A stretch of 64,000 nt of DNA from Octopus sinensis. Taxonomy: Eukaryota. The position numbers were made by a program, and so were the translations under genes. Position 1 is the first letter of the stretch. Each line of letters starts with the position of its first letter. The DNA is taken from NCBI RefSeq assembly GCF_006345805.1, contig NC_043021.1, positions 21,018,001-21,082,000 of the forward strand. Direction: 5' to 3'. The notes below the pieces were generated by a model. It made no database searches and was not told where the DNA came from. It was given only the letters and a program-made list of their open reading frames with translations. This document shows, piece after piece, positions 41,885 through 46,861 of this stretch.

Positions 41885-44800
41885 TTGTGTGTCTGTGTTT
41901 CTCCCTCCACCATTGCTTGACTACTGATGTTGGTGTGTTCACGTCCCCGTATCTTAGTGGTTCGGCAAAAGAGACTGATAAAATAAGTATTAGGTTTACA
42001 AGGAATAAATCCTGGGGTCGATTTCTGTGACTAAAAGTGGTGCTCCAGCATGGCCGCAGTCAAATGACTGAAACAAATAAAAGAATAAATAGTTGTCCAG
42101 TGGCTGAAACAACTAAAAGATAAATAAAAATACATAGTTGTTTGTTCCTGGTGTATATTGAACTCAGTTCCCTTGTCTTTGCATCTTACTATTTCTGATT
42201 TTACATTTTCCCTTACCCCATATGTGCTATGTCATACTTAAGGAGGCGCAATGGCCCAGTGGTTAGGGAAGTGGACTCGCGGTTTCGATTCCCAGACCGG
42301 GCGTTGTGAGTGTTTATTGAGCGAAAACACCTAAAAGCTCCACGAGGCTCCGGCAGGGGATGGTGGTGATCCCTGCCATTCTCTTTCACCATAACTTTCT
42401 CTCACTCTTACTTCCTGTTTCTGTTGTACCTGTATTTCAAGGGGCCGGCCTTGTCACTCTCTGTGTCACGCTGAATATCCCTGAGAACTATGTTAAGGGT
42501 ACACGTGTCTGTGGAGTGCTCAGCCACTTACACGTTAATTTCACGAGCAGGCTGTTCCGTTGATTCAGATCAACCGGAACCCTCGTCGTCGTAACCGACG
42601 GAGTGCTTCTGTCCATGTCATACTTAATATTTAATTTGATGTTCTTGTTACTTTTTTGCAGACCAACATTCCATTCCTGTTGAATGTGCTCCAGAATGAA
42701 CGGTTCCTCTCCGGCATCGTCGACACAAACTTCATTGACGAACACTCTGAGCTGTTTCAGTTTGAACCATCGCAGAACCGAGCGCAGAAACTCCTCCACT
42801 ACATGGGCCAAGTCATGGTCAACGGACCACAAACACCACTTGCTACCAAACTCCAGCCTTCAGACACTGAGCCAACAGTTCCTGAAATTCCTGTCGGTGA
42901 GTAAAGAACAGTAATTCATGATTCCTTAACTCTTTAGTATTTAAACCGGCCATATCCGGCCAAAATATTTAATCTGTTTTATATTCAAACTGACCAGATC
43001 CAGGCTCTCACACCTACCCTACAATGTTATTCTACATTAAGTGATTACACCATCAAGATCTTAAAGTAATGAGATAATGCATGATTAATTCAAATCAATG
43101 GGAATCAATAAGCATTATACTTGATAGAATAATCTGAACACTAAAAGGTTAAACTCTTACCCGTTGACAAAAAATTTTTCCCCCCGAATTTAATTTTGAA
43201 AATTTCCACTGATGAAATCTCTTGAAATCCATGTATTAGACACTCTGAAAAATATCTTTTTACTCAAAGATTCCACACAAAGGCCACTTGACTAATTGCC
43301 ATAAAATTATTCACAGGCCTTTTCCAACCTCTGTCCCACCAGTATGCAGTTTCTTTGTCTGTATTTGCACCAGGCACCAGTCTGATCTGGCAGTGTTTCT
43401 ATAGCTGGATGCCCTTCCTAATGCCAACCACTCCGTGAGTGTAGTGGGTGCTTTTTACGTGCCACCGGCACAGAGGCCAGTCGAGGCGGCACTAGCAACG
43501 GCCACATTCGGATGAATTTTTTTACGTGCCACCAGCACTGGTATCACAATTTCCATTGATTTTTGATCGATTTCGATTTCGCTTGCCTCAACAGGTCTTC
43601 GCAAGCAGAGTTTTGTGTCCCAAGGAGGAAAGGTATGTATAAGTGGACTGGCTACATCCCAGGTAAAGATCACGGATTATGGTCTCACTTGTCCTGCCGG
43701 GTCTTCTCATGCACAGCGTATTTCCAAAGGTCTCGGTCACTAGTCATTGCCTCGGTGAGACCTAATACAATTTCATGTATGTTTTAAAGGCTACAATGAC
43801 TATTGCTATTACATTTCATTTGCCTGACATAAAGTCACTCACAAGCATGTTCCAATCTCTGATCCACTAGCGTGTTCCAGCCTATGGCTCATAGGTATGC
43901 TCTCTCCTTTGTCCATCGTTACTATAAATGCCTCTTTTTTTCTGAGAGCTGGCTGATGCAGTCCACTGCCATCTTTTTTGATCCTGTTTTTAACTGTGTA
44001 TATGTGTATCTTTAATGGACTGGCCACATTGACTCTACTGCTATCATGCTGAAATTGTATTAGACTCAAACATGTGATCTCAGATCAAATTAATTAGTAA
44101 ATATGAATGGGCGTGGGTGTGTGGTTAAGATGTTTGCTTCTCAAACATATAGTTTCAGGTTCAGTCCTACTGCATGGCATCTCAGGCAAGTGTCTATAGA
44201 CTCAGGTTAACCAAGGCTTTTGTGAGTGGATTTGCCAGATGGAGACTTAAAGAAGTCTGTCATGTGTGTGTGTTTGAGAGTGTGTGTGTGTGTGTGTGTG
44301 TGTGTGCACCTCCTTGTCTTGATCATCATCATTATCATTGTTTAACGTCCGTTTTCCATGCTAGCATGGGTTGGACGGTTCAACCAGGGATCTGGAAAGC
44401 CAGAAGGCTGCACCAGGCTCCAGTCTGATCTGGCAATGTCTCTACTACTGGATGCCCTTCCTAACGCCAACCACTCCGTGGGTGTAGTGGGTGCTTTTTA
44501 CGTGCCACCTGCACAGGTGCCAAGCGAGGCTGGCAACGGCCACGATCGGTTGGTGCATTTTACGTGCCAGTCAAGGCGGCACTGGCATCGGCCACGATTC
44601 GGATGGTGCTTTTTATGTGCCACCGGCACAGAAGCCAGTCAAGGCGGCACTGGCATCGGCCACGATTCGGATGGTGCTTTTTACGTGCCACCGGCACGGA
44701 AGCCAGTCTAGGCGGCCATAGTTGTAAATAAGTGTTGCTGTCACACAAGCAGTGTCATTCATTTCTAATATCCTGTGAGAACATGTCTGGCCATGGAGAG

Positions 44801-46861
44801 ACATTACCATGCTTGGAAATAGGTGAGGGTTGGCAACAGGAAGAGCATTCAGCCATAGAAAATCTTCCCCATTGAAACCCTGCTCTTCCCATGTAATTAT
44901 GGAAAAGTGGACATCATAGTGATGATACTAAAGTGACGATGATAAACAAACCAAAAATATTTTGGGGTTTATTTTTTTCAGACAAAAGCCGTCCAAATGG
45001 TTGACAAAGAAAATGTTTGTGTTTCTCCTTGTCTTGACATTGCATGATTGCTGTAAATGAGAGCCACTGCCATACAAGCAGTGTCGTTCATTCCCAATAC
45101 CCAGTGAGAACATGTGTAGTCATGCTCGGAAACAGGTGAGGGTTTTGCAACAGGAACGGCATCCAGCCATAGAAAATATTCCCCACTGAAGCCCCGCTCC
45201 TCCCATGATACTAAAGTGATGATACTAAGGTGAGGCGGTGACCTGGCAGAAATGTTAGCACGCCGGGCGAAATGCTTAGTCGTATTTCGTCTGCCGCTAC
45301 ATTCTGAGTTCAAATTCCCCCGAGGTCGACTTTGCCATTCATCCTTTCGGGGTCAATAAATTAAGTACCAGCTGCGTCAATGGGATCAATGTAATCGACT
45401 TAATCCCTTTGTCTGTCCTTGCTTGCCCCCTCTATGTTTAACCCCTTGTGGGCAATAAAGAAATAAGACACGTTAGCATGCCAGGTAAAATGCTTAGCGG
45501 TATTTTGTCTGCCACTACGTTCTGAGTTCAAATTCCGCCGAGGTCGACTTTGCCTTTCATCCTTTCGGGGTCGATTAAATAAGTACCAGTTACGCACTGG
45601 GGTCGATGTAATCGACTTAATCCGTTTGTCTGTCCTTGTTTGTCCTCTCTACTTGTGGGTAGTAAAGAAATAGATACTAAAGTGATGATAAACAAATCAG
45701 AAATATTTCTCTTTTTTTTTTTTTTCAGACAAAAGCCGTCCAAATGGTTGGCGAACAGTTCTGCTTCAAGAAGGGCCAGAGGGTTTCGCCAAGAAGGTCC
45801 GTCAACACAAAGGCCTGCTACTGATGGATACCACATTCCGAGATGCTCACCAATCTTTACTTGCCACCCGAGTACGCACCAGGGACCTCTTAAACATCTC
45901 ACCGTTTGTGGCACACAATTTTAACCAATTCTACAGTTTAGAGAACTGGGGAGGTATGAGGTTTTTGTTATTGGATTTTTTTCATTCTTTTTTTCTAGAT
46001 TTCTTTCTGTGTGTATGTGTGTCTATGAGTGTGTGTGTGTATATATACACGTACACACCCAGATACACACGTGTATATATATATATATATCAGGTGCAGG
46101 AGTGGCTGTGTGGTAAGTAGCTTGTTTACCAACCACATGTTCCCAGGTTCAGTCCCACTGCATGGCACCTTGGGCAAGTGTCTTCTACTATAGCCTCGGG
46201 CAGACCAAAGCCTTGTGAGTGGATTTGGTAGACGGAAACTGAAAGAAGCCCGTCGTATATATGTATATATATGTATGTGCATGTATGTTTGTGTGTCTGT
46301 GTTTGTCCCCCTAGCATTGCTTGACAACTGATGCTGGTGTGTTTATGTCCCCGTCACTAAGAGAGTTGCTTATTTGTAAAGAAATATAACGTGACTTCAT
46401 TGACCGAGATTAGCGTGGTCTTTTCCGTAGGCTTTTCTTTCCACAGGTAAACCTCACCTGTCCTCCCCTTTACACTTTATATTGACATTTCTGTGATAAC
46501 GATCCCTATTGATCGATTATTCTTTTTCCTATTTTTACCCCCCTTTTTCTTTTTTTCTTTTCTTTTTTTTTTGCTTCCCTCTTTCTTTCCTTTTACGATC
46601 CCTTTTGATCGAAAACCAAACCCCTTTTTTATCCCCAAAAGAAAAGCTCTGCCTTGTAATTTGTCCCGTCTTTGTGCAGCCCTGTGTGGCTAATAAAGAA
46701 ACATTATCTATCTATATATCTATTTACTACCTACCTACCTACCTACCGACTGACCTATCTATGTCTGTCTGTCTGTCCATTTATCTGCATCTATTTGTCT
46801 GTCTGTCTGTTTATCTGTTTGTCTCTATTTATCTATATCTAACTGACTCTCTGCTTGTCTA

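Follow-up and report, generated by a model that had tools for sequence, protein, structure and literature searches.

Intron 9 of the PC gene of Octopus sinensis carries, upstream of the working acceptor of exon 10, a second copy of that acceptor together with an in-frame stop and a consensus donor. An earlier note on this DNA, made from the letters alone, regarded the arrangement as a candidate poison exon and proposed that it could be a new splicing-based switch on PC. The question raised by this locus is whether the exon-like unit regulates PC output or is a leftover of the event that produced it. The comparison of octopod genomes presented here suggested that the element is probably a neutral remnant, left behind by an old tandem duplication, and at most a low-level cryptic exon. 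This reading was preferred over that of a regulatory switch because the element evolves as introns do and because its splice site has been lost in a sister species.

The PC gene is complete in the window (the whole stretch of 64,000 nt of O. sinensis DNA analysed here), where tblastn combined with splice-site reconstruction located 20 coding exons on the + strand, from 19753 to 61905, encoding 1194 aa. The tblastn query was an approximate human PC probe used for exon location only, and the exons were then verified from the window itself. The reconstructed 1194-aa protein matched the annotated Octopus PC at 100%, and the 90% cluster of this protein has members from O. vulgaris, O. sinensis, O. 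bimaculoides and Argonauta hians. The O. sinensis chromosome sequence (GCA_006345805.1, CM016883.1) was identical to the window base for base over the 44,153 nt fetched. The two exons that enclose the intron of interest are the following.

42662 to 42896, + strand: PC coding exon 9, 235 nt, ending in phase 1 with the donor CTGTCG|gtgagt.
45729 to 45953, + strand: PC coding exon 10, 225 nt, where the carboxyltransferase part begins.

In O. sinensis, intron 9 is 2832 nt long, and its real boundary with exon 10 reads TTTTTTTTTTTCAG|ACAAAAGCCGTCCAAATGGTTGGC. The exon-like unit within it comprises the features listed here, with donor strength given by the rough metazoan position weight matrix (PWM) described below.

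44926 to 44932, + strand: TACTAAA, a branch-point-like motif of putative function, about 50 nt upstream of the pseudo-acceptor.
44968 to 44981, + strand: pseudo-acceptor TTTATTTTTTTCAG, with 11 of 12 pyrimidines ahead of CAG and 15 of 20 in a longer count.
44982 to 45135, + strand: candidate pseudo-exon, 154 nt, with its first 27 nt derived from exon 10 and the remainder formed by the left part of duplication unit B.
45002 to 45004, + strand: in-frame TGA at the position of a TGG in exon 10; O. vulgaris has the TGA as well, and O. bimaculoides does not.
45133 to 45141, + strand: pseudo-donor CAG|GTGAGG, junction 45135|45136, scoring 11.0 bits vs a median of 10.1 for the real donors.

The upstream copy keeps TTTTTTTCAG followed by 22 exon nt identical to the start of exon 10, ACAAAAGCCGTCCAAATGGTTG. 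At its boundary, which is TTTATTTTTTTCAG|ACAAAAGCCGTCCAAATGGTTGAC, the AG occupies 44980-44981 and the junction AG|A lies at 44981|44982. When exon 9 is joined to the pseudo-exon, the frame reads D-K-S-R-P-N-G-stop, the TGA ends 131 nt before the pseudo-donor, and the 154-nt length shifts the frame as well. The product of inclusion would be a protein of 555 aa that, according to Pfam, keeps the Biotin_carb_N, CPSase_L_D2 and Biotin_carb_C domains and is without HMGL-like, PYC_OADA and Biotin_lipoyl. The earlier note had described the copied acceptor with its 22 exon nt, the change of TGG to TGA, the D-K-S-R-P-N-G-stop reading, the CAG|GTGAGG donor 154 nt past the acceptor and the stop 131 nt before the junction, all of which were confirmed in the sequence, and Pfam likewise bore out its description of a 555-aa product with the BC domain but no CT or BCCP. 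The TGG-to-TGA change that it described is not what makes the exon poisonous, as an in-frame stop persists 11 codons further on when TGG is restored in silico; stops are present in all three frames. Because of this second in-frame stop, any inclusion would have been unproductive since the duplication. The GC content of the pseudo-exon (0.43) lies between those of the introns (0.41) and the exons (0.47). Judged by its sequence, the pseudo-exon is a competent PTC-carrying cassette in O. sinensis, because its 3' splice site is intact, its donor is strong and a stop lies in frame.

Splice-site strength was estimated with a rough PWM built from approximate metazoan frequencies (in place of MaxEntScan or a cephalopod model), and pyrimidines were counted in addition. 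On this rough scale the pseudo-acceptor scored 5.5 bits vs 13.8 bits for the acceptor of exon 10, and the 19 real PC acceptors had a median of 7.7 bits and a range of 1.2-14.2 bits. The pyrimidine counts likewise showed an acceptor that is typical for the gene but much weaker than that of exon 10 with its 21-nt run. Two real acceptors and one real donor of the gene scored below the corresponding decoy sites with the same rough PWM, and the pair was the sole one, among acceptors and donors spaced 50-300 nt apart in 38.6 kb of PC introns, to score this well on both sides. The real acceptor, too, has a TACTAAA motif about 50 nt upstream, and the motif ahead of the pseudo-acceptor is the duplicate of that one. 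From these sequence features, low-level inclusion of the pseudo-exon is plausible in O. sinensis and O. vulgaris. Appreciable inclusion in the same two species is possible, because no other decoy pair of such quality was found in the 38.6 kb of introns.

A rival explanation is that of a regulated, functional poison exon. According to that explanation, splicing factors in O. sinensis and O. vulgaris would tune the inclusion of 44982-45135 and thereby set PC output, by diverting PC pre-mRNA to a degraded PTC transcript or to a protein with only the biotin carboxylase part. The branch-point-like motif, the U-tract and the CAG are all intact and a consensus donor follows after 154 nt, the two sites are the best decoy pair among the introns of the gene, and the in-frame stop lies 131 nt ahead of a junction; all of this would be in keeping with such a function.

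With regard to origin, a segment of about 300 nt that takes in the last part of intron 9 together with ~27 nt from the start of exon 10 is duplicated head to tail. This duplicated exon-10 acceptor region of ~300 bp had been named as the source of the candidate exon in the earlier note, and that proposal was borne out by blastn and by the comparison of three species. In blastn, the match of unit A (44719-45012) to the two pieces of unit B (45013-45224 and 45673-45760) had an E value of 9e-31 in the body and of 5.5e-21 in the part next to the acceptor, so that the likeness of the two units is far above chance. An alignment of six sequences, namely units A and B from each of three Octopus species, showed homology from end to end. 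The duplicated units and the repeats around them are laid out as follows.

44100 to 44322, + strand: SINE-like repeat ending in a (TG)n tract plus CCTTGTCTTGA, also present in O. bimaculoides.
44323 to 44717, - strand: interspersed-repeat insertion of 395 nt that splits unit A, with 68-nt internal tandem repeats inside.
44719 to 45012, + strand: duplication unit A, the upstream copy, made up of an old diverged repeat fragment, the tail of intron 9, the acceptor and ~27 nt of exon 10.
45013 to 45224, + strand: duplication unit B, part 1, which extends to the SINE insertion site.
45225 to 45672, + strand: dimer of the SINE-like repeat within unit B, head to tail, in units of ~220-230 nt that are 86-88% identical.
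45673 to 45728, + strand: duplication unit B, part 2, in which the TACTAAA motif and the 21-nt pyrimidine run precede the real acceptor of exon 10.

The upstream copy, which had been placed at ~44715-45005, is real; it is, however, split by the 395-nt insertion, and its true left end is the (TG)n...CCTTGTCTTGA tract formed by the last ~27 nt of the SINE-like repeat, at 44296-44322. O. sinensis and O. vulgaris have the 395-nt insertion and O. bimaculoides lacks it; the insertion is oriented opposite to the old repeat fragment within units A and B. Similarly, the insertion in the second copy that had been described as a SINE flanked by a target-site duplication was found, but it is a dimer and not a single copy. 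The dimer is bordered by a perfect 18-nt target-site duplication, GATACTAAAGTGATGATA, at 45207-45224 and 45673-45690, and the site is empty (uninterrupted) in O. bimaculoides. The SINE-like family has at least 38 copies of at least 100 nt with 82-88% identity in the 64-kb window. Neither a tRNA by ARAGORN nor a match in Rfam was obtained for 42500-46500, although diverged SINE heads are often missed by both. A second strong donor, AAG|GTGAGG, is found at 45229, at the edge of the SINE. Another very common interspersed repeat, in the form of an old and diverged fragment, makes up the body of the duplicated unit, and the GGTGAGGG donor motif is part of that fragment; its paralogue in unit A reads TAG|GTGAGG at 44822|44823.

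Given the density of repeats in this region and the diverged fragment of a very common family in the body of each unit, it could be argued that no duplication took place and that the two units are independent insertions of one repeat family, or that the layout is an assembly artefact. This explanation was rejected and has next to no probability in our estimation. The homology does not end with the repeat fragment but goes on across the unique tail of the intron and the acceptor and takes in 27 nt of coding exon, and the units are far closer to each other than to other copies of the repeat, where matches are limited to ~34 nt. In addition, the same layout is seen in three independent assemblies, with a clean 301-nt spacing in O. 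bimaculoides, and the copies are only ~75-90% identical, which rules out collapsed or duplicated haplotypes. Tandem Repeats Finder did not report the ~300-nt repeat at the O. bimaculoides locus, because the copies are too diverged and contain indels; the duplication was shown there by alignment instead.

The orthologous loci of O. vulgaris, O. bimaculoides and Argonauta hians were compared with that of O. sinensis. The duplication was found in O. sinensis, O. vulgaris and O. bimaculoides, that is, in the three independent assemblies, whereas intron 9 of A. hians is 512 nt long, of unrelated sequence, and has one acceptor and no duplication. This pattern of presence and absence places the duplication after the split from Argonauta and before that between O. 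bimaculoides and O. sinensis. O. bimaculoides has neither of the later repeat insertions, and there the distance between the two acceptor motifs is a clean 301 nt. Its upstream copy, TTTTTTTCAAACACAAGCCATCCAAATGGTTGGC, has CAA in place of CAG and the TGG intact, and the exon-derived 27 nt differ from those of O. sinensis by 4 mismatches; besides the CAA, three further changes were counted in the exon-derived 27 nt. Between O. sinensis and O. bimaculoides, the pseudo-exon had an identity of 92.2% and its exon-derived 27 nt one of 85.2%, compared with 91.4% over all alignable PC introns (9 kb) and 100% over the first 42 nt of the real exon 10. Between O. sinensis and O. vulgaris, identity was 96.8% in the pseudo-exon and 97.45% in the introns. 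An indel of 16 nt makes the pseudo-exon 154 nt long in O. sinensis and 170 nt long in both O. vulgaris and O. bimaculoides. The acceptor AG, the stop and the donor are all kept in O. sinensis and O. vulgaris, two species only ~2.5% diverged.

Poison exons known to be regulated usually stand out from the introns around them by much higher conservation, which counts against such a role here. The orthologue comparison, one of the checks that the earlier note had put forward, returned a CAA in O. bimaculoides and a pseudo-exon at the intron background, not the conservation above that background expected of a poison exon. The proposed switch on PC was not supported, on several grounds. The acceptor AG is missing in O. 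bimaculoides, divergence proceeds at the neutral rate of introns with the exon-derived part changing fastest, and a length change of 16 nt separates the very two species that keep the sites. Additionally, only the 1194-aa product is annotated, and the truncated isoform is neither annotated nor assembled. The presence of acceptor, stop and donor in both O. sinensis and O. vulgaris speaks for the poison exon, but these shared sites are uninformative because the two species are too close (97.5% identity in introns). A young lineage-specific function would also leave no conservation signal, so a regulated poison exon is conceivable only as a young function of the O. vulgaris/O. sinensis lineage, and even in that form the probability that we assign to it is low. 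Altogether, the compared sequences carry no sign of selection for a regulatory role.

Annotation and protein records were consulted for the truncated product. The NCBI annotation for O. sinensis and O. bimaculoides contains the 1194-aa product only. A search of protein collections with the 555-aa isoform gave a best match of 74% identity and no Octopus sequence, and no Octopus protein ending in DKSRPNG was retrieved by either the junction-peptide or the 555-aa searches of these collections. The missing isoform has little weight, however, because the collections contain no transcript-derived Octopus PC. A junction-centred query of 154 aa returned matches that were all 270 aa or shorter, amongst which the sole Octopus-like one was an ORF of 88 aa from Logan contigs; these short contigs cover exon 9 and end ~150 nt into intron 9. 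Exact look-up of the two ORFs that overlap the pseudo-exon returned no record, and a literature search on octopus PC splicing found nothing. Known variation of PC transcripts lies in the 5' UTR, and PC is not known to be under poison-exon control.

The neutral relic accounts for these observations by the following course of events. In the ancestor of the compared Octopus species, after the Argonauta split, a PC segment of ~300 bp, with the (TG)n tract of intron 9 at one end and about 27-30 nt of exon 10 at the other, was duplicated head to tail. The downstream copy remained the working exon-10 acceptor, and the upstream copy became an intronic decoy, in which a branch-point-like motif and a U-rich tract are followed by CAG and by 27 nt taken from the exon. 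Downstream of the decoy, the left part of the next unit supplied, by chance, a consensus donor within the old repeat fragment. As the copied piece of exon runs into non-coding sequence with stops in all frames, inclusion would always have been unproductive. Decay then followed separate routes. The O. sinensis/O. vulgaris lineage acquired the TGG-to-TGA change and separate repeat insertions into both units, with a 16-nt deletion in the cassette of O. sinensis, and O. bimaculoides acquired the CAG-to-CAA change and three more changes in the exon-derived 27 nt.

In O. sinensis and O. vulgaris, the cryptic exon may still be included at a low level, in which case the transcript with the premature stop would probably be degraded; the real acceptor, with its 21-nt pyrimidine run, is expected to dominate. 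The sequences themselves show the duplication, its distribution among the species, the neutral divergence and the disappearance of the AG from one of them; from this we infer low or no inclusion and decay of the transcripts that do include the exon. The 50-55-nt rule for NMD is a vertebrate rule linked to the EJC, and NMD in Drosophila is EJC-independent. The argument that the included transcript would be subject to NMD rests on the vertebrate 50-55-nt rule and may differ in cephalopods. The premature stop also lies more than 1.9 kb of coding sequence ahead of the normal stop, and a junction-independent form of NMD would probably recognise it too.

The element resembles several known systems, and it appears to be an undescribed instance of a kind already known. 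Like intronic cryptic exons (pseudo-exons) and exons that arise by exonisation of repeats, it combines usable 3' and 5' sites with stops in every frame, and, as in repeat-derived cryptic exons, its pseudo-donor sits in an old transposable-element fragment. As with cryptic exons in general, rare inclusion that is cleared as noise would be expected, and low-level splicing of such exons has been reviewed (PMC8801146). It differs from them in that its acceptor was made neither by point mutation nor by a repeat but by direct copying of the constitutive acceptor next to it, along with 27 nt of exon. With the poison exons of SR-protein genes and SCN1A it shares the form of a cassette between constitutive coding exons with a premature stop before a further junction, and it is unlike them in that it is not conserved above the intron background and that its acceptor is lost in a congener.

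Tandem duplication of exons can give rise to mutually exclusive or alternative exons, as Kondrashov and Koonin reportedly set out in 2001. Exons 5a and 5b of the SCN-alpha genes are a case of tandem exon duplication in which unannotated or partial exon copies also occur in the adjacent intron (10.1101/2025.08.16.670673). The PC element, like SCN-alpha exon 5a/5b, is a local head-to-tail copy that includes an exon boundary. Unlike in tandem exon duplication, the copying extended over just the first ~27-30 nt of the exon, and therefore the copy brought no exon-derived donor, no open frame and no alternative protein segment. If it is a relic, as we favour, the locus would be a clean and datable case of a partial exon duplication that seeds a decoy splice site. 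It would also show how such a site is disposed of by lineage, through loss of the AG in one and through a nonsense change, an indel and repeat insertions in another. The relic would be useful as a natural test of how splice sites compete in cephalopods, where splicing rules are little studied, and would add no new principle. Only if regulated inclusion were seen in RNA would the locus point to post-transcriptional control of an anaplerotic enzyme by a route not known before.

A further explanation considers the unit as a decoy exon, whose sites would engage the real ones non-productively, so that intron 9 is spliced slowly or retained and transcripts are held in the nucleus. Decoy exons have been proposed to drive intron retention in human erythroblasts (PMC6097662, PMC7373989). 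The PC element is like these in being a non-productive exon-like unit with splice sites of real quality in a long intron. The model covers introns of more than 1 kb that contain cryptic exons with good sites (PMC6097662, PMC7373989), and intron 9, with 2832 nt, carries both splice sites of such an element. The PC element differs in its lack of conservation, with a CAA in O. bimaculoides and divergence at the level of introns, and the model comes from, and has been demonstrated in, mammals only. Additionally, in the predicted fold of 44400-45200 an inverted-repeat arm at 44432-44480 pairs with 45133-45183 (-41.5 kcal/mol) and covers the pseudo-donor, and such a duplex could mask it. A decoy role is very unlikely on this evidence. 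A competing predicted duplex with the unit A paralogue is equally good (-42.4 kcal/mol), and dozens of copies of the family lie nearby. The duplicated acceptor might also be imagined as a young valve for unproductive splicing of PC in O. vulgaris and O. sinensis, perhaps modulated by the duplex between 44432-44480 and 45133-45183, with O. bimaculoides, which is without the inverted repeat, having silenced its decoy by mutation of the AG; we consider this quite unlikely.

The similarity of the two units was also used to judge the age of the duplication, which the favoured reading places in a common ancestor. The raw O. sinensis copies are 93% identical near the acceptor vs 75% elsewhere, a difference that could have pointed to gene conversion or constraint. 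This excess is explained by coding and splice-site constraint acting on copy B alone. After ancestral reconstruction from three species, the excess similarity of A and B near the acceptor was not significant (Fisher p = 0.32 and 0.46), and neither gene conversion nor constraint is therefore indicated. When each copy was represented by three species, the identity of units A and B at the inferred species ancestor came to ~90%. Set against an intron divergence of 8.6% between the species, this ~90% identity at the time of the split suggests, as a rough estimate, that the duplication is roughly twice as old as the split between O. sinensis and O. bimaculoides.

Exon use in the pyruvate carboxylase (PC) gene was considered in relation to the strength of its splice sites, which were scored with a rough metazoan position weight matrix (PWM). 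Two constitutive sites are far weaker on this scale than the corresponding sites of the intron 9 decoy exon.

Weak constitutive splice sites of the PC gene (slash, exon boundary; scores from the rough metazoan PWM)
50899, plus strand: exon 13 acceptor, attcactttAAG/G, 1.2 bits, far weaker than the decoy acceptor
32086, plus strand: exon 5 donor, TTG/gttggt, 2.3 bits, far weaker than the decoy donor

Since both of these sites lie far below the strength of the decoy, exon use in the PC gene is clearly not set by splice-site strength alone.

Fold prediction suggested that the pseudo-donor of the decoy may be covered by an RNA duplex with the inverted repeat 44432-44480, which belongs to the repeat insertion in unit A, the upstream copy of the tandem duplication. 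The predicted pairing of 44432-44480 with 45133-45183 is an imperfect duplex of approximately 50 bp (-41.5 kcal/mol), and it was present in both the MFE and centroid structures when 44400-45200 was folded (z = -3.2). A competing duplex of equal predicted stability could be formed by the same inverted repeat with the unit A paralogue, 44819-44870. The insertion itself is lineage-specific, and O. bimaculoides, which does not carry it, is also the species in which the decoy AG has been lost.

The repeat load of the 64-kb window is extreme. A SINE-like family of approximately 233 nt is present in at least 38 copies (counting those of 100 nt or more), a "ggatgcccttcctaa...gtgccaccggcac" family, whose members contain tandem repeats of 68 nt, in at least 31 copies, and a third, SINE-like family in at least 20 copies. 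The PC gene spans approximately 42 kb in O. sinensis versus approximately 26 kb in O. bimaculoides, and the far longer introns of O. sinensis are due mainly to such repeat insertions.

Simple repeats were also encountered. In intron 10, Rfam matches to mir-297, mir-466, mir-1277 and mir-1003 at 46007-46086 were below threshold (26-44 bits versus gathering scores of 81-90) and coincided with a (TG)n/(TA)n repeat; these are most likely low-complexity artefacts. Almost all of intron 9 of Argonauta hians is repetitive: a tandem repeat of approximately 35 nt (GATCCTAGATCAGTGTAGTTAGGAGATATTT-like) comes first, and a degenerate, telomere-like tract of CCCTAA/CCTAA repeats then extends over approximately 190 nt.

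L004:10652-11163: Argonauta hians PC intron 9, 512 nt

Comparison of the PC gene (19753-61905) with its locus in O. vulgaris, a very close species, revealed strongly uneven identity along its length: 99.3-99.8% in introns 3, 4, 6 and 7, 93.7-94.6% in introns 1, 9, 15 and 16, and 97.4% in exon 9. This unevenness could reflect mis-pairing of repeats in the alignments or, alternatively, mosaic ancestry or haplotype differences.

Exon 9 with adjoining intron was also recovered in Logan contigs of approximately 1.2 kb from three sequencing runs (L005-L007; SRR11869390/91/94), whose source is an Octopus-like species or population. Their exon 9 peptide (P0033) is 95% identical to that of the window, with L for M and I for V.
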